A DNA stretch of 63,178 bases, counting the filler, from Choristocarpus tenellus KU-1152 (taxonomy: Eukaryota; Protista; Phaeophyceae), in NCBI GenBank assembly GCA_964200185.2. It is 12 parts of 12 records of this genome, joined end to end, with 100 filler letters (N's around TTAATTAATTAA, not from the genome) between each part and the next. Parts side by side here need not be neighbours in the genome. Positions count along the whole stretch, not along the records: positions 15,772 to 24,871 come from CAXNAD020003983.1; 11 more parts are not named here. The stretch is one strand, 5' to 3'. The notes below the pieces were generated by a model that saw nothing but the letters and a program-made list of their open reading frames with translations, did no database searches and had not been told where the DNA came from. The stretch's first letter is position 1, and the number at the start of each line of letters is the position of its first letter. Made by a program: the position numbers and the translations under genes. This document shows positions 15,130 through 25,710 of this stretch, piece after piece.

Positions 15130-15620
15130 GAACAGGAAATGTGACACATACCACCTCTTGCATACATGCAAATGACCTAATGGACCATGGTATCTACTTT
15201 TCACAAAAAAACATGTTTTGCTCCGATACCCTATATTTAAGTCATTCTTCATCGAACAAATAGCAGCCAAAGCAGCTGTGCTCCACACACCCCTGCCTCT
15301 GTATTAGCCAATACCAACCCGCAACTTCCAAACATGCAAGCAAAACAAGAGAATCTACTCCTGTACGACTCAACAAAAACAAATAAACCACAGTTGTGGG
15401 GCAATTCTCTAAAAATCTAATCGGAAATCATTGCAACAGTCCTAGACAGGTCACTGGTCAAAGTGGTAGCTCACCGTGGGTACAATCTTCGTGTTATTAC
15501 CCACTCCCTCATGCACTGTACCTCGTGGCATGAGGTAAGGGTACTATCAACACTCTCTCACTCAAATAATACATTTGGAGACATCACCGTTCCATAACAA
15601 CCACCTCACAAACTTTGTAC
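15130..15620 (-). pseudogene. Possible highly decayed piggyBac-like transposase C-terminus
   Basis: Frame-broken ...SVDSTLTSCHEVQCMREWVITRRLYPR (similar to the VD...E..W.T..W..R region) is followed by ICSMK...GYRSKTCFF...VCKRWY (Cys-rich-domain-like). Weak, judged by eye only. Confidence 0.3.
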
Positions 15621-15671: not shown

Positions 15672-16241
15672 NNNNNNNNNNNNNNNNNNNNNNNNNNNNN
15701 NNNNNNNNNNNNNNNTTAATTAATTAANNNNNNNNNNNNNNNNNNNNNNNNNNNNNNNNNNNNNNNNNNNNGCACCATTTTGGGTCAAATTCATCCTCCA
15801 TAGTATGCTCCATCCTCAATTTTGGTGATCGGCTGTTATTTATTCCGTAAGGCTACCTATGTGCTACTAATCTCGAACTGCTCGGCGTTTTCTAGAACAC
15901 GAGAAGAAATGCTCGCGCTATTCGCCTATAACAAACACACAACCAGGCTTTAGATCGAACCTGCGGTTAACCGGATCGACCCCTCAATATTTCTGAATGC
16001 CCTAGGATTGTACCGTTAAAAAAAAACTTACTAGGGACATCATCCACCCCAACTTAGGTAAGGGTTGGCTGGGTCCTGTCAAAATCTTGCGAGTCAGTGG
16101 TTAATGAAAGCTGTTCCTTGGATTAAGTTTTGGAGGTTTGGACACCATTGATGCTAGACTTTCTTTTATGGGAATTGTTTTCGGTTATACCAACCTCACG
16201 TGGGAAGCGCTACAAGTTGTACACCTAAACTATTCCATATA

Positions 16242-16244
<3 letters not shown>

Positions 16245-16273
<29 letters not shown>

Positions 16274-16308
16274 GTTACTATTATTATTACTGTTATTATT
16301 ATTATTAT
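16245..16308. repeat. (TAT)n microsatellite
   Basis: Direct reading. Other simple repeats lie at 7149-7172 (TG), 27935-27998 (TAG/TGG), 29128-29260 (ACT/ACA with a duplicated ~26-bp unit), 55979-56012 (TAA) and 56113-56177 (CT/TA). Confidence 0.95.
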
Positions 16309-16309
16309 A

Positions 16310-16947
16310 CCCTCTGTAATTTTGCAGATAGATGTGTCTCGGGGAAAACCAATGAAAAGTCAATCAAATATCAGAACCCCTGAAAAAGTAACAACTGTCG
16401 TAAATGCGAAAGACTATTTTCTATAATCTATTTACTATTTGACGACCAGGTATGCTATACCACTGCCCTCCTATGCCTCCAACCTAGCATAGCCCTACAC
16501 CCCAGAGCGGGAAACTAGGGAAGCACCGTTATGTTGCAAAAACGCTGGACATATAATGAGGTAGGAAGGCTACATATTGCGGAGCGATGCTGAAATGGGT
16601 CTAGAATAAGATTTGAGGGCAAAGGTGGTGCGACAATAGGGATGGGATTATAGGGATGCCACTGCCTAGACGTGTCATGCTCTTTAAGCTGGAATCACCA
16701 GGGAGATGGGCATGGAGGGGTTTATTGGATTCTTGGGATGCGTCCCTAGCTCCTCCCCCTGGGGCACAGGTATAGGTAGATTGAAGACGCAGGAAGGCAG
16801 TAAGTAGTACAGCATAGATAGTGATGAAGTAACAAATGAATTAGTGTCTTTCACATTTATGACATTTTCTTTCTTTAGGGCTTACACTGACAATGTGTAT
16901 AGTATTCTTTGGTTTTCCCTCTGACACATCTCCAAAAAGTCAGAGGG
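16310..16947. mobile_element. Foldback/MITE family F with ~200-bp degenerate inverted arms; related shorter copy at ~53195-53510
   Basis: The left arm ccctctgt...agatgtgtctcggggaaaaccaatgaa matches the reverse complement of ttctttggttttccctctgacacatct...cagaggg. The left arm also aligns with 53200-53410. It is flanked by TAT/TAA microsatellites. Confidence 0.7.
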
Positions 16948-18533
16948 AATAATAATAAAAATAACAGGGATGGGATAACCAAATACAACATGTTAGCATC
17001 AAACCAAGAATGAAGGCAGTACGATTAATTTTTGTCAGATAGTTACAGTGAGAATGATCATAGGAAACTGTATAATGGTCAATGCCTCTGACCGTGGGTT
17101 GGGCTATATCCGGAAGGAAAAATACAAAAAATACCGGTATATATTTATTATGATTTTATACCAACCTCTCCCTATTAAAGGGTTCTTTTTCTTGAAACTG
17201 TTTCTACAAAAGATGGTCTAAGATTCTACACTCTACATCAATGAATAGTGAGTGGGATCTGTATGTCCAGACTGGTGCTTAGTTACCTGTGCGATTCTAC
17301 ATTGTGATCGTGTGACTCTAATATAGGATATGTGATTCACAGGGACACCCACATCAACACCCAAGTATTATGTTTAGGGTTAGGGTTGAATGGATATTTA
17401 TGGATGGATAACATTTTTATCTCCTACTCAAATAATTGACTTTCTTCTCAAGAAAGTTGCGTAGTAGGTTGACTGTAGATTAAATAAATGTCATATTGGG
17501 ATTATAATCAGGAAAGGTCAGTTCACTGACACTATTCACTGCATAATATACAGTTTATCATTTGCAGTGTATAGTAGGGATCTCAATATGTAAAGAACAC
17601 ACAGTAGTATACTATAATATTCATATCATCACAGTTTTCATATTATATATTGAATGATGGATCTTGTGTTCACGTCACACCAGACACTGTTAGGTCGAAC
17701 TCGGACTAGATTTCATAAAATTTGGTGACGTTCCAAACCCTGGACGACAAATGACTTGATACTATCACTAACCCTAAAGTATCTCACAAGAATCCTAAAT
17801 CAAGAATGAGGCGGCGATCAATTAAACTGGAGAAGGTCCGACAAAAGATTCGAGGGAGGAGGTGGAGTGAGGTAGTTGAACTCAGTGAATTAGAAAATAA
17901 TGGTGTAACATCAAATTATTATCATACTAGCATATATTCTTGAATGTTTATGAGTTGAAAGTCTTTAACCATGGCTCGGTAGAACATTGTTCCAACAAAA
18001 AGAGTGAAGCAGGTAGTCTGCTTGTTACTATACATTAATATGTTTTGTAGTATGAGAAATGTGGTGAGGGTCCTGAGCGGGATAATTTTCGATAGGGTGG
18101 AGAGGATTAATATAAAGACTTGCCTTTTCAATGCTATTCAGTTTGAAAAATGAAATGGCAAGAAATTCTTATTTTCATTTTTATTGAACCAATTTGGACG
18201 TTAATAGGAAGAGGATTTAGTAGTTGGTTGATTCAATTGCAATATATGTAGAAATATCGATACTTGATTGATTTTATGCAACACATTATGGTGAGGTATT
18301 CACCGATAACTCTGATTCTTGAATACTAGTTCCGAAACTAGCCTTGACGAAATATTTCTGTGGCCAAAAAAAAGTAGGAGATAAGGGAGGTAACCCCAAC
18401 AAGTAGAACAATAGGAGTGTTGAACATTTGCACACCCATCCATCCACCTCCTACGCCTCTAGGACTTGAGACGGAGTATCCTCTCACGTCTTAGAGGGTG
18501 TTGGTGTGTTAAGGGACAGTAGTGAGGTTGACC

Positions 18534-21500
18534 ATGTCGATCGGATGGTTACACTCGAAGGAGATCGGTACTGGGGAAAACGTTGATGCTAGTCATCTAT
18601 CTCGCGGCTCTCGGTGGTGGAGGGGTCGATCGGCATCATCCCCAGCAGTATCTCCCAGACAACAGAAGGCCAGGTTGTCATTTGCCAGATTCGCCAAGAA
18701 GGGTACGAGTCAAGAGGCTGAAGATCTTCATTCTGCAGGAAAGCAAGGGAAAGAGACACCTCATTCACAAATATTTTCCAACATCAAACTGCGTGGGGGA
18801 GGTATTGTCTCCCCAATCGTAGACTCTGGGAAAACGTACGAAGAGCAGAACCGTAAGACCCCGACCATGGACAAAGTCTCTGGCGGGTATGCAGGAAAAG
18901 TGGATCAGCTGGAAGGGGAGCTAGGTGAAGAGCTGAAGGAAATTGATCCTGGAAATAGAGACGGCTCGCTTCCTTCATCACGGAAACCAGCATCGGTGTC
19001 TCCTGCCTCATCTCCAATTGTTTCGATTGGTCTCAGGAGGGTCGAAAGTGCACCACTCGGGAATCGTACACTCATCGAGACAAACCCTGAGGCTTTGTTC
19101 CACCCCATTCCCCGCGAGAAATCCTTACTCTGCCTTCCACCAACCCCACCTTTGCCAGAACTTGTGCTGTCTGCCACTCCTCCCGAGGGTCCACCAGAAG
19201 TTACTGTTGCCACACCTTCAATCACACAGGATGCACATGGCACTACAACTATTGGTCCTGGATCTATTGCACCTTATCCCCCTTCACCCACCGCAGTTGA
19301 TCCATCTGTTCCGGACACGAAGTATGGGATCTCTTCGCTGGCCGTCGATGCTCTGCCTCGAAGGGATGCGTCCGAGGTGCAGGCCTTCCCCTCCGCATCC
19401 GTAAAGATGGAAAATGTTCAAGATTCTGACTTTCCTCAGATGGAAGTGAAGGAGAACTCACTCCTTGAGGGTAGAGCAAGAAGTGCGGTGCGTTTTCTAT
19501 CCTTGAGATCAAAGAAATTGTTGAGAGTCCAGCTCATCGGTGAAGTGGAACCACCTGCGAAGGTTGTCGCTCTCCCGCTAACATGTGATCTGATTTTCTT
19601 CCATAATGCCCAACCTCTGCATAAAATGGTAGTCATGGGACAGCAATCTAGTTTTCATTAGGAGTCCCTCCCCACCTCCTTCCTCTTGTCACTCTTATGT
19701 ATTCCAGATATGGCAGGTCAATCTCAACCAAGACGAGAACAATGGAGAGGCGAGCAAGCGCTCCCCCAATGGACTCTCAGCGGCACCGCCTGGACACTTT
19801 CTGTCAGATGTCTCTTCTGACGTATCCTCCGAAGTCGGATCGCTAGGAGGCCTAGGTGAAAGCGACATGAACCGTGAAATGAGGCCTGTTGTGCGTTCTA
19901 TCCCTGCAGTCCCTAAGCTGGACGGGCGTCAAAATGGTTCCTCTTCCATGCCACCGAGGTCCGGATCGAAAGTGAGAGCAGGCTACAATTTAGAGAGAAG
20001 GAAATCTTTACCACATAGTCCGCTTGAAGGAAGAGGTGATAAAGAACACCAGCTTCCCACTAACTTGCCGGTGGTGGTGGGAGGCAATGATGAAAAACTG
20101 CATGGATACAATGTTGCGTCACAAGGTCAAGCGCTTGTTGTGCCAGAGGCGTCAATGTGGCGTTCAAGGAAGGAAATTTTGTCGGGATGGGACACCATTG
20201 CAGCAGAACCGCCCGAAGCTATTGTTGCTGAAACCATTCAGGTGTGTAACTGCAACGGCTTTCCATTCTATTATAGTTTGTGCATGTGTTCCATACCTTT
20301 ACTGTAAATGATATATTGAACAGGCCTAGCGTCTATAGTGCTGGATTCCGTGCAGGCTATGACCTGTTCATCAATCCTCTTCAATGTTTTGTCTATTTTA
20401 TTCTGGTGAAAATAAAATGAAGGTCTCATGGAATCTCCATTTAAATCTCGATTTCATAGTGAAGATGTGAAGATTGGGGAACATATGGAGGAGCAGACAA
20501 TGTGGTAGGCTTGATTTTTTGTTTTTTTTCTTCTTCATTGGTGTTACATGATGTATGAAAAGCTAGAGAGGATTGAGGAGGTCAAGGGGTATGTGGGTTT
20601 CTCACTGGTGAATGCTCATGTTAACGGTCTAAAAGATGATATCCTGGATACTTGCAATAAGCTTTGGCATGGAAATTATAGATGCAACTGCACTATTATA
20701 GATCATGATGAAAGTAATCATGAAAGAACGCATGGAAGCACTGGCTCTAACCGTGTAAACGCAGTATGAATTGGATTAACATGTCTTTTTTGTTACTGTT
20801 GCACTTTTGATCTATATAGGTACGTATTGTCTTTTGCTACTTCCCCTTATTGTGCCCTTGGTGTCTTCGCTTTTTAAACTGTCAGAGGATCGTTGATTAT
20901 ATAAGTTTCATTGGTACATCCTTCGCCCATTTGTTTACAATCCCCTCCCTGCCGTTGTAGTACCCCTTCAAAAGCATTTGAACCACCCTCCTTCCCCGAA
21001 GCATGTCGGTCAATGCAGATGGGCTCGACAGTTTACATTGTTTTTATCTCTTTCTGTTACACAATATTATTAGTACCAATAGTCCAATAACATAACCCTA
21101 ACCCTAACCCTTAGATTCACACTGCCTCCACCATTGTGAAAAAATTAAAGGTTTAGGGTTTCGTGTGGTGTATGTGTGTGGACGGGTATATTGCTGCAAT
21201 CTATATCTAGGGGGATAGGTCCGGCTCACTCTTTTCTGGTAATAGTACCTGGTCTCTGTGTTCAGGTTTGTGAACTGACTGATAGGAGAGTTGCTCAGTA
21301 ACTAGGGTTAGGGTTAGGTTTGGAGCCCAGGATTTGCTGCTACATAGCACAGCGTGTTCTCGATATCAACATCAATATTTTACACAAAACCGAAAATACA
21401 CTTCTGAGATTGATGTCGAGAAACTGTGTACTTATTTTGATTAGGCCATGTCCGTTTTGGTGATCACTACTCTCTTTTTCATGTGGAGGGTTAGAGGTTT

Positions 21501-23727
21501 CGACCCTTGACCCATGCAAGTAGACATTATGCAGTCCTTCTCCATTCATTTGCATGTATCTATTGTTACTTCTGGTTGCATTGCTGAGAGGGATGGGGTT
21601 CGATGGGTTCTTAACAAAAGGACCATCGATGACCCTCAATTTTTCAAGGGAGTGGTCTGAAATCTACCACTGGATTCAATTATTATTTTTCTTTTACCAC
21701 TATGATGAGAACTGTCCTCAACTGTTACCTGGGAATGTGTCTCATGGGAGAAAGGTAGTTTATGATCTAGAATTTGGTAAGACTGCCCCCAGCCCTGTGC
21801 CCCCTTGAGTGACTCCCTTGTCTCCGGAGCCTACTTTGGAAACCATGGCGCTAATTCATCGCTAATGACCTTGTCTAATCTGCTCTGATGTAGAGGTGGT
21901 GAACTCCACCCCCTGTGGCAAAGCTAAAGATGTGTGTTAAAGATGGATATGATATTTATAATTCGCATGGTGTTGTATGTGTTTCCTTTTGAGATGGCAG
22001 TAGACCTGGAAGGGCTAGACATTGCTGTTATGCCAAACAGTTCACAGCACCATGTACCCTAACCCTAACCCTCTAAAGGTTGCTCTTGCCCTACCTATAG
22101 GCAACAGAAATTTGTACTGTTTTCTCAGATTAAGTTTAGGGTTACGGTTACGGTTAGTTTATTGTCAACCTTTTTTTTTTTTTTCAATGACCATTTGTAC
22201 ACACGTAAATTGCCTCTTTTTTGCATGAATGAAATATCGCTCCTTTCAATGTTCCAAGACTATATTAATTGGCAAACGGTGAATAGGGTGACATCGATTT
22301 TTTCCAAAAGAACGCCCCTTACCACTGAAAACTATGTTGAACTATCAACTGAAATGATGCAGTTTTTTTGGGAATGGGTGACGCCTACTTTGAGGAACCT
22401 TGGATTCCTGCCAACTAAGAAATGAGGAGACATTTTTTTTAATGATGTTTACCAATGATGGGTTGGTATAACCCCTCTAGTATATTCTATCTTAACAGTT
22501 TTTTCCTGAGCTGTAGTCACACCTTATTGCTGACTAAACCATGACCCCTTTTTTTTCTCTCTGGGTTAGTTTTTGGCTGTACCAATTATTGGCACATGTA
22601 TGTACCTTATTCTGTCAACAATCTAACATGCTGATTAGTTCTAAGAAAAAATATTTGACGTTCAGCGGTACTGTCATCCCACCTATCCCATACATTTATT
22701 TATTTTTGTGGATAATGCATTTATATATATATCATTGTCTTCCTAGTGATACCGTAGCCTTGGTTTTCTGCTCTGTGCCCCCCCCCTCTTCTCCAGCTCT
22801 AATAGGGCGGACCTTATAGGTTGCTGGGCACATGTGGAGTATATGGGGAACACTTTGAGTGCGTGTATTGTAGGGGGTCACATGACTTACTTTGACTTAC
22901 TTGATCTCAGAGTTCTCTCCCCCCTCTTTCCAAGTTTGTGAGTCCGCCTGAAACTTTTGAGGTGTGGACTTCAGTTGCCGATTTCCAGTTTCTGCTGAGA
23001 AGTTGTAATTGTGGAGCTCACTGTATTACTAATATTTTGTGGAGTCTTAAGCCCCAAGAAACAACTCTATTTTTGCAATACGTGGTTCTTATACAGCAGA
23101 GCAAAATCATTCAATGCATCTTTTCCGCCCTAACCTTATATCGAAGTGTATTCTGCTTCAAAGTATTGAACTGCATATTCTCCTTAGTTTCTTATTCTAT
23201 TCAATTTTCTGGTTATCTCTCTTGAAAGGAATCGATTTGCTATTTGAATTATGTTGCTGGTTCTGATTGTGACCTGTTTTCTTTTTGTGGGGGATTCATT
23301 CATTGGTGCAATACACCCGGGTAGGGTTAGGGTTAGGGCTAGGGCTAGATTCCACTCAGCTGAAACCATTTGACATGCTGCATTCAAAAAATATGTTTTT
23401 TGTAAAATCTGATTGGATGAAGTAGGAATAACCCTTTGGCTGACTGCAGATGGCAGACCTCTTAGTGATGTGAAATGTGCAAGACAAGCCCCCGTTTAGT
23501 AAGTTTTCATTGTTGTATGTACTGTTGTTCAAGGCACCCATCAAAATTCCGAGACGTCCTTCATTTTGTTTTTGTAGATGACGGGAGACCTGGAGTTTAC
23601 ACGCTTGCTGCGATTGGATGGGAAGCTGGATGGCAAGCTTATCTCAAAAGGAAGCCTTATTGTGGGTAGCACTGGTTACATGCTTGGGGACGTTAGGGGC
23701 TTACGCCACCTCTGTGTGGAGGGAGAG
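18534..23727 (+). CDS. Bactofilin (polymer-forming cytoskeletal, DUF583/PF04519) domain protein with long Ser/Pro-rich N-terminus; exons ~18534-19562, 19708-20241, 23578-23727; 3' exons not found before contig end
   Basis: Exon 23578-23727 has a tttgtag acceptor and a gag|gtaggt donor and encodes MTGDLEFTRLLRLDGKLDGKLISKGSLIVGSTGYMLGDVRGLRHLCVEGE, with bactofilin beta-helix GDL/LRxDG/LIVG/GDV/VEG windings. Exon 19708-20241 ends in phase 0 at ...EPPEAIVAETIQ|gtgtgt, which supplies the missing first winding. The exon 1 donor is uncertain (19562 or 19628). Confidence 0.8.
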
Positions 23728-23950
23728 GTAGGTACTGCTCTGAATGATTATATTTTTTCTGAGTGACATTGTTGCAGTATGTATCACCTACACAGATGAC
23801 ATTAGAGATATCCTGCCAAAGGAGAAAGTGTGCAACAGGGAATTGATACTTCCTTTTTTTTACTCATTGTTTTTGAGTCGGTGGAATATGATTGACCAGT
23901 GCCCTAACCCTAACCCTCTAATATTGTAGCAGGATTTAAGGGTTAGGGGT
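21093..23950. repeat. Cluster of short interstitial telomere-like (TTAGGG/CCCTAA)2-4 tracts
   Basis: Tracts at ~21093-21111, 21302-21320, 22057-22072, 22135-22158, 23321-23348, 23902-23917 and 23940-23950. Others lie at ~17373, 29053, 29179, 44451-44500, 55250-55272 and 59398. Confidence 0.8.
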
Positions 23951-24672
23951 AGCTTGTGGTTATTTTGATCAAATTGGGCCAACTTAGAGGTATGTTGAAG
24001 GACTTCAGGACAATTTGTAGTGATGGATGAGTGTTTGTGTTGTGTATTGGAGTAGTGTTGGCAGCAGCATGCCTTTTGCTGTTCTGAGGGGTTTGAGGAA
24101 TAGTCCTCTTATCTCATCTGTGTTGCTATACAAAGTGTCTATTGGGGTACAAAAAAAAAAGGAAGGTGATATATTGGTGGAGCTGATGTCATTCACCTTG
24201 AAGGTGTGACTTTTTTCAAGGGAGATGTATGTATACGGAAGAGCTTACCAGATGTAATATTTCTAATTTTATTCACGTTCATCACTGTTATTTCCACTTA
24301 CCTGGTAGGTGCCACACCTGCAGTCAACAGGTAGTTGGAGGAGAAAATTAGAATTGCCTTAACCCTAAACAGGAACACAGTATTTGGAAAAGAACTCAAT
24401 ACTTGCAGAAAAAATAGATGATGGAAGAGAGAATTGACTGTAGTGAAGAGAGGCTGTCAAGAATAGCGCAGGCACTTTTCTCTAGCACCCAATATCTGGG
24501 ACGAAATGTCCTTGATGCTGTCAGCATTGCCAAGGTACTACCAGAAAGAGAGAAGAAAAAAAGCGGTGATATGGGGAGACGTTTTTAGAGGTGAAGGGGC
24601 AATTATTACTGTTAGTTATGGAATAGGGTTAAGGGTCTTCAGTTTCTTCTACAGTATTTCTAGTTGTACACT

Positions 24673-24852
24673 GCCTCAAAGTATCTAGGGGGGGTGTCGG
24701 CTGTCCATTTGCGACCACTTTTTTCATGTCGTGATTTTTGGGTGATTTGGTTGTATACATCGGATGGATTATGAAAATGCACTTTTCCTGATCAGGACCC
24801 AAATGGACACCCTGGTGTAGACCCCTCCCCCCCCCCCCAGATACTTTGCGTA
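24673..24852 (+). mobile_element. MITE family A copy, TSD ACT
   Basis: act|gcctcaaagtatct...agatactttgcgta|act. Confidence 0.9.
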
Positions 24853-25710
24853 ACTACTACTCTGGCAAAGANNNNNNNNNNNNNNNNNNNNNNNNNNNNN
24901 NNNNNNNNNNNNNNNTTAATTAATTAANNNNNNNNNNNNNNNNNNNNNNNNNNNNNNNNNNNNNNNNNNNNTAAATAGTAGAAATTAAAAAAAAAAAAAA
25001 AAAAGAAAAATACAATTATTATAATATTCTCAAACTTATTTTTTATTCTATCTGTTTTAATGTATTGAGCACATAATAGATGCTCAAGAACTTTGAGAAA
25101 AATAAAGAGATATAATAATAGGGCAGAGCAGCACACAACACGCTTTGAAAGCATTACAGTGATTGTTTGACACTGAGAGCAGGTAGAAATCTAAGACAAA
25201 CTGCAGGGGGGGTGACAATAGAGGTGTTTCTCAACACATGTCAGCATCACAACAAAACAGACGTAAGTGGGTATCAGTTTTGATTCTGCTATTGGAACCA
25301 TTTCGACAGTTGAGGCATTGTTGTTTCACACTGCATCTCATTGTCCACAGAAGTGTTTTGTGTTAAAACCGTGCACTACAACCCCCCATCCGTGTGAATG
25401 TAGAATTACACCAAAAGAAAGAGACCAAGGTGTGCAACGAATAATATTGTAGTAGTTGGGGTTAGAGAAAATTATGCAGGTCACTAAGTAGAACATACTT
25501 TGAACAACGAAACGTTCTGTTGGAGACTCTACAAAAATTCAGGAGCGTTCCAGGAAGGGGATAGCTGTTAGTTTTTGGATGCATATTGTATGCAGATCTA
25601 TGACTATGGACTGCTACACTGAACTCGTATCTGCTGATGGGTCTCATTCTCTCTCCCTATCTTAACCCCTATCCCTAATCTCTCCCCCCTCAGGGTGCTC
25701 CAACCATCAC

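Follow-up and report, generated by a model that had tools for sequence, protein, structure and literature searches.

A transcribed and spliced gene of the brown alga Choristocarpus tenellus that very probably links a long N-terminal arm to a bactofilin core

The contig CAXNAD020003983.1 of the brown alga Choristocarpus tenellus takes up positions 15772-24871 (9100 bases) of the window, by which we mean the whole stretch of 63,178 nucleotides (nt) of DNA that was analysed, and it carries three coding exons (A, B and C), the last of which encodes approximately the first half of a bactofilin beta-helix. The parts of the gene lie on the plus strand. The picture that we derive from the data is that the piece very probably holds the 5′ portion of a nuclear C. 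tenellus gene that is transcribed and spliced and whose product has a bactofilin core behind a long N-terminal arm. The gene is represented publicly by P0001 ('unnamed protein product [Choristocarpus tenellus]', 447 amino acids (aa)), which carries a precomputed assignment to the Pfam family PF04519 and already joins position 20241 to position 23578. An Rfam search of the contig gave no match.

The exon borders were established by comparing the runs X1 and X2 with the genome. In X1, the entire stretch is present in one piece at a flat depth of about 20, and this run may be source DNA. In X2, word depth amounts to 324-620 over the exons versus about 20 over the introns. A 1603-nt contig of X2 (record 9) is colinear with the genome from about position 18419, a value derived from the record offset (the record begins 31 nt before 18450), up to 19487 and then jumps to 19708-20241, skipping 220 nt; the joint 19487|19708 has a depth of 324 and 255 nt on its shorter side. 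A minimum 5′ untranslated region (UTR) free of any ATG thus occupies 18419-18533 and is followed by exon A (18534-19487, 318 aa, depth about 324), intron 1 (19488-19707, 220 nt, GT..AG, phase 0, donor context GCG|GTGCGT) and exon B (19708-20241, 178 aa), which closes in phase 0 with ...ATTCAG|GTGTGT. Both exons are open frames, exon B is also part of P0001, and intron 1 is identical in P0001 and occupies the same place in the counterpart from Discosporangium mesarthrocarpum that is described below. The initial annotation had the acceptor at 19708 right but placed the donor at 19562 or 19628, both of which are wrong given that X2 and P0001 agree on 19487. At position 19892 within exon B, all reads of X2 and X3 show a T to C exchange that replaces valine by alanine and that is found neither in X1 nor in the window. 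As X3 looks like DNA, the exchange reflects a difference between alleles or strains rather than editing.

Exon B is separated from exon C (23578-23727, 150 bp, 50 aa) by intron 2 (20242-23577), which is 3336 nt long, has GT..AG borders, lies in phase 0 and contains high-copy repeat elements. Exon C is an open frame in phase 0 with the acceptor ...TTTTGTAG| and the donor |GTAGGT, and it is covered by X2 contigs at a depth of 350-620. The junction of the two exons, which had originally been proposed from the sequence, has four supports, namely the joint 20241|23578 in X2 record 13 (GT..AG, 3336 nt skipped, depth 621), the identical join in P0001, the position of the corresponding Discosporangium intron (SIQ|ING) and a confident model calculated with AlphaFold2 (AF2) that extends across the junction. 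These findings have to be set against the idea that the Ser/Pro-rich open reading frames are part of one gene and the bactofilin exon part of its neighbour, their join being an artefact of annotation or short-word assembly. It is true that an intron of 3.3 kb is long and that the joining X2 contig is short (58 nt, of which 28 nt lie on one side), but exon B runs without a stop codon up to a phase-0 GT donor, no stop or start signal occurs between the parts, the 34 residues that close exon B are conserved, adjoin the core and are modelled as a helix together with the domain's first strand, and the same fusion with the same junction is present in Discosporangium. Two separate genes are, all in all, very unlikely, and a single gene with a fused arm and core, as initially claimed, is real at the transcript level.

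Downstream of exon C, the gene leaves the contig within intron 3 (23728-24871, at least 1144 nt). X2 record 15 departs from the genome after 23727-23730, and the 25 letters that follow encode, in frame, VLGDVVCES (LGDVVCES after the Val codon). A search for these 25 letters showed that they are absent from the window, and therefore the next exon of the gene must lie past the end of the contig, at a distance of at least 1144 nt. In Discosporangium, the exon that follows the core exon opens with VVGDLVCES and lies 2720 nt downstream.

The assignment of exon C to the bactofilins, the central claim of the initial annotation, proved to be correct. Exon C matches Pfam PF04519 with 31.3 bits (gathering score 27.9; E 2.5e-7) over profile positions 9-57 of 98, and phmmer yielded E values of 1e-12 to 1e-10 against many PF04519 proteins. 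An alignment of 56 sequences, 55 of them relatives, showed that exon C retains all six invariant columns (Gly, Leu) and nine of the ten near-invariant ones, the exception being a Phe to Leu exchange. A Protein Atlas lookup with exon C pointed to bactofilin clusters with a sub-threshold score of 0.86. Within exon C, positions 23615-23639 contain a 12-nt tandem duplication (TGGATGGCAAGC x2.1), from which the Asp-Gly-Lys-Leu that recurs in the first winding is translated.

A profile built from 71 cores matches the solved bactofilins 6RIA (E 1.3e-14) and 2N3D (E 6e-12) across the whole domain. Modelled with AF2, the Discosporangium core reaches a predicted local distance difference test score (pLDDT) of 86, and in Foldseek the model matches 6rib_A with a target-normalised template modelling (TM) score of 0.90 and a root mean square deviation of 1.2 A, and BacA with a TM score of 0.79, at sequence identities to the solved bacterial proteins of only about 20-26%. 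For the C. tenellus fragment P0001:352-435 (pLDDT 82), AF2 predicts a helix and then the same strand pattern through the junction of exons B and C. The helix (residues 10-22; RKEILSGWDTIAA) and the first beta-strand of the core (residues 27-29) are encoded at the end of exon B (20167-20241), and pLDDT is 84-94 from residue 21 onward. The beta-helix that had been predicted from the sequence is thus well matched by the complete Discosporangium core, while for the C. tenellus half-domain alone the best Foldseek match, 6ria, stayed below significance (E 0.19, TM 0.48).

Relatives were collected with phmmer from 1.84 billion proteins, using P0001:345-435 as the query, and 288 proteins were found at E<=1e-3. 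The top match is P0002 (CAM9210289.1) from D. mesarthrocarpum (E 9e-20, 47% identity over 85 residues across the junction of exons B and C), and residues 681-765 of this protein align with the end of exon B plus exon C at E 7e-28. The named matches are all from stramenopiles (Discosporangium, Pylaiella, Ascophyllum, Heterosigma, Pelagophyceae, Chrysoparadoxa, Paraphysomonas and Aphanomyces); a named bacterial protein, CcmA, is recovered only with 31% identity and E 8e-6. Since bactofilins are mainly a bacterial family, one may ask whether the piece stems from bacterial contamination or is a recently transferred and silent gene. The gene has three GT-AG introns, however, two of which are seen spliced in RNA-supported joints, its GC content is 52% in the exons and 40% in the introns (40-46% if the flanks are included), and its nearest relatives are stramenopile and not bacterial. 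The splicing evidence refutes contamination as well as silent transfer, for which we see practically no chance, and the gene is a naturalised, intron-containing algal gene as had been suggested at the outset.

The Discosporangium protein is the closest counterpart of the C. tenellus gene product, not only in its core. P0002 comprises 948 aa with the core at residues 692-800 and consists of an N-terminal peptide, a domain-free middle part with conserved islands, a pre-core helix and the bactofilin core. Its extension of about 690 aa is longer than that of the C. tenellus protein (496 aa), the middle parts do not align with each other, and the Discosporangium gene is complete whereas the contig breaks off within that of C. 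tenellus. Six exons make up the Discosporangium gene (L001:10001-20451), which shares three intron places and phases with C. tenellus, namely before Ile-Trp, at SIQ|ING and at VEGE|VVG. Its exon 2 opens with ATATGG (Ile-Trp), as does the C. tenellus exon at 19708, its core exon (15358-15507) also measures 150 bp, and it differs by one extra phase-1 intron in the linker. We take C. tenellus to belong with the Discosporangiales, although NCBI still files it under Sphacelariales. The Discosporangiales, with Discosporangium named directly, are the first lineage to split from the other brown algae (Phaeoexplorer paper).

The comparison with Discosporangium also bears on the start codon. The public model P0001 begins at Met112 (18867-18869), which would make 18534-18866 part of the 5′ UTR. 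The X2 contig, on the other hand, has at 18534 its first ATG, which is in frame, with an in-frame TAA just upstream at 18510, and residues 1-40 and 88-98, both upstream of Met112 and both covered by the RNA contig, are conserved in the annotated N-terminus of the Discosporangium protein. For these reasons, 18534, which was also the start given in the initial annotation, is a better start than the public 18867, translation from Met112 is improbable, and the public start probably lies 111 codons too far downstream. With the start at 18534, the region ahead of the bactofilin exon amounts to 318 + 178 = 496 aa.

This arm is exceptionally long for the family. Among 135 full-core matches, the stretch ahead of the core measures 61 aa in the median and 106 aa at the 90th percentile, and the longest one, with 691 aa, is that of the Discosporangium protein. 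The C. tenellus arm contains 12-13% Ser and 8-11% Pro, so that the early description as a low-complexity extension of about 510 aa holds for its great length but needs correction in two respects: it has 496 aa, and it is moderately Ser/Pro-rich and biased in composition without being strongly low-complexity. Exon A begins with a basic N-terminal module (aa 1-116, isoelectric point 10.2) that is followed by an acidic, Ser/Thr/Pro-rich stretch. A Pfam search with exons A and B found no family, a Protein Atlas lookup with the N-terminal 116 aa returned nothing usable, and word-index protein searches with exon A and P0001 returned only P0001, the biased composition saturating the candidate list.

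Four stretches can be aligned between the long proteins of C. tenellus and Discosporangium. The first one is the N-terminal peptide (aa 1-40, 18534-18653; MSIGWLHSKE ... SRWW ... SP), found by local alignment to the N-terminus of P0002, for which a score of 65 was obtained versus 26.5 +/- 5.2 (maximum 51) in 2000 shuffles, the top value of all window pairs in that comparison. The N-terminus reads MSIGWLHSKE in C. tenellus and MSMSWIFSKD in Discosporangium, and the SRWW segment that follows, flanked by arginines and already singled out in the initial annotation, is common to both. Behind this peptide come about 450 residues in which no domain could be recognised and which contain no more than three short conserved islands. 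The second stretch is an island of aa 88-98 (18795-18827), where GGGIVSPIVDS matches GGGITSPLPDS of P0002 (GGGI-x-SP); its score of 43 was reached by none of 1000 shuffles in a narrow context and by 14 of 1000 in a wide one. At the beginning of exon B (19729-19860), the island SPNGLS...GHFLSDVSS aligns with residues 448-490 of P0002 with a score of 71 versus 42.7 +/- 6.1 (maximum 69) in 500 shuffles and a BLASTP E value of 9e-4. The fourth stretch is formed by the last 34 residues of exon B together with the core. For the remainder of the arm, alignment with P0002 is not significant (59 of 1000 shuffles reach the score). Such a pattern of short islands fits a flexible linker with short functional motifs, and a content of 62-68% disorder-promoting residues suggests that the arm may be disordered. 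It contains 13 Ser/Thr-Pro sites. Neither a signal peptide nor a transmembrane stretch was detected (highest 19-aa Kyte-Doolittle mean 0.88), and because of this a cytosolic location is most likely. Targeting to an organelle was considered and set aside, as the N-terminus lacks a hydrophobic signal peptide and has acidic residues within its first 20 aa.

Recurring motifs were seen in the N-termini of other relatives. In a set of 106 relatives that start with Met and have more than 20 aa before the core, a polyproline-basic motif (MSGPPPPPRKK-like) occurs within the first 30 residues of 45 proteins, the motif G-[AS]-G-[YHLF]-[NH]-[VAM] precedes the core in 19, and both features occur together in 16. 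Twenty of the 106 start with MF[KRSG][KRT], resembling the bacterial membrane tail. The named members of the whole set are stramenopiles. The bactofilin of Chrysoparadoxa begins with MFKTSNRKG. This distribution suggests at least two conserved types of N-terminal tail in eukaryotic bactofilins. A few relatives (P0120, P0121 and P0126) have hydrophobic, signal-peptide-like N-termini, and some eukaryotic bactofilins may accordingly be secreted or directed to organelles.

Other brown algae possess short bactofilins of 283-367 aa, such as Pylaiella CAM9496010.1 (300 aa), Ascophyllum CAM9276848.1 and the proteins of Ectocarpus, Scytosiphon and Sphacelaria. They have about 75-115 residues before the core envelope and start with MAIFS...KRTTPRG, with lysines close behind. 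Their N-termini share 12-20% identity with that of the C. tenellus protein, a level too low for the tails to be called homologous. The cores of the short forms are 81-88% identical to each other versus about 45-53% to the C. tenellus core. Both groups have in common the sequence PE-x-x-VAE-T ahead of the core, followed by G-x-L-E-F-T-R-L-L-R, and in the form PE-x-[IM]VAE[TS] this pre-core motif is common to brown algae and is not found in the pelagophyte or raphidophyte proteins. The two core introns of Pylaiella (LDQ|RPE and NMQ|EVY) lie 11 and 7 codons away from the positions in the Discosporangiales (Q|MTG and VEGE|V). In a tree of 71 rows, the two long forms are paired on a long branch (1.28) with a support of 76, and seven short forms form a tight clade with a support of 99.

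Several points weigh against the reading of the gene as a transcribed bactofilin with a flexible, anchoring arm. None of the runs is on record as RNA, and the RNA nature of X2 follows from its depth and joints; the joint 20241|23578 rests on the 58-nt contig mentioned above; and only about half of the core, which when complete comprises about six windings and a hydrophobic interface at its C-terminus, is encoded on the contig, with just nine further residues (VLGDVVCES) from the loose RNA end. To the structural match of the half-domain, which stayed below significance, must be added a self-association score of 0.01 for two copies of the Discosporangium core, a value that, by the rule of the tool, speaks neither for nor against self-association. 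Disorder came out as borderline in the charge-hydropathy test, and the N-terminus is not a canonical MFSKKKK tail in that its hydrophobic pair and the Ser-Lys behind it do not directly adjoin Met1 and precede acidic residues. Finally, the tree does not resolve the relation between the long and the short groups, and the positions of the core introns differ from those in Pylaiella.

The long form may therefore not be an orthologue of the short brown-algal form. It is conceivable, if rather improbable, that it is a diverged paralogue or a separate acquisition in which the beta-helix has ceased to form filaments and instead provides a large disordered protein with a folded module for interactions at its end. 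The core identity of only 45-53% to other brown-algal cores, the long branch with its unresolved placement, the different positions of both core introns and the lack of support for self-association, with the reservation just given, would agree with such a scenario. It is countered by the fact that the invariant columns of the core are all kept and the near-invariant ones nearly all, by the superposition of the Discosporangium core model on TtBac at 1.2 A and by the pre-core motif that is common to the other brown algae. We thus retain a bactofilin core of the usual kind behind a long arm as the preferred interpretation.

Outside the coding exons, several short elements with lengths of about 55-230 bp have inverted telomere-like repeats at their ends, with (CCCTAA)x3 at one end and (TTAGGG)x3 at the opposite one. 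They lie at 21093-21321, 22054-22157 and 23899-23950, and also at 17367-17387 and 23320-23354. Over these elements, X1 depth climbs to 390-905 compared with about 20 elsewhere, and the breakpoints of dozens of contigs coincide exactly with the element ends. This looks like a very high-copy family that resembles miniature inverted-repeat transposable elements (MITEs) and has telomeric-repeat termini. Upstream of the gene, a (TTA)x21 microsatellite at 16245-16308 is the source of poly-Tyr and poly-Asn pseudo-open reading frames at 16138-16383.

How does the gene relate to known bactofilins? Bacterial TtBac (6RIA/6RIB) and BacA (2N3D) belong to the same Pfam family and probably have the same fold, as the TM scores of 0.90 and 0.79 for the model of the Discosporangium relative suggest. 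Bacterial bactofilins comprise about 120-180 aa, with an 8-residue tail of the MF-S-K type directly before the core, whereas in the C. tenellus protein approximately 500 residues separate the N-terminus from the core and the gene contains introns. The bacterial proteins bind the membrane via a tail of the MFSKKKK type with two hydrophobic residues and two lysines (PMC12448750). Bactofilins have been reported from stramenopiles and ascomycetes, Ectocarpus D7G0L1 being named, and horizontal transfer from bacteria has been proposed (Deng et al. 2019, bioRxiv 10.1101/617639). The sole eukaryotic bactofilin with filaments formed in vitro, PiBac of Phytophthora infestans (PITG_07992, D0N980), is also a stramenopile protein (Deng et al., bioRxiv 10.1101/617639); it stems from an oomycete, no long N-terminal arm is reported for it, and it is likened to the C. 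tenellus protein by description only. Functional work has been confined to prokaryotes, that is, to bacteria and one archaeon (2024 paper), there is no eukaryotic bactofilin with a known cellular role, and bactofilin is not mentioned in the Phaeoexplorer genome paper.

In the light of the report by Deng et al. (2019) and of the public PF04519 assignment, the novelty originally attributed to the gene was overstated. It belongs to the known group of stramenopile bactofilins, is publicly annotated in a shortened form and is an architectural variant and not a new system. What is new here is the corrected start, the direct evidence for splicing and the arm of 500-690 aa that is shared by the two Discosporangiales, has conserved islands and comes with its own intron pattern. 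In practical terms, the start is moved 111 codons upstream, and the 3′ exons are to be sought on another contig.

For the C. tenellus protein, polymerisation, membrane anchoring, disorder and phosphorylation are putative properties. Judging from homology with Thermus TtBac, Caulobacter BacA and Phytophthora PiBac, complete cores would stack end to end into non-polar filaments in a nucleotide-independent manner. With less certainty, the conserved N-terminal peptide, in which Trp, Leu and Lys are followed by SRWW with arginines, could be the counterpart of the bacterial membrane-targeting tail or, alternatively, a partner-binding site; as its resemblance to the bacterial tail is short, that it acts as an anchor is a tentative proposal to which we give somewhat less than an even chance. 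The long and probably flexible middle part would tether this peptide at a distance from the core and, with its 13 Ser/Thr-Pro sites, might offer targets for regulation. The conserved islands of the arm are candidate sites for anchoring or for the binding of partners. A more far-reaching scenario, which is speculative and on present data rather unlikely, holds that in the earliest-branching brown algae the membrane tail was moved 500-690 residues away from the filament core through expansion of a flexible, phosphorylatable linker. What the pair from Choristocarpus and Discosporangium makes clear is that the bactofilin family can bear an N-terminal arm far beyond the usual length. Should the expansion scenario be true, the filaments would be densely covered with long tethers, each tipped with a Trp/Arg-rich anchor, and would constitute a spacer-type cortical scaffold without a bacterial counterpart.

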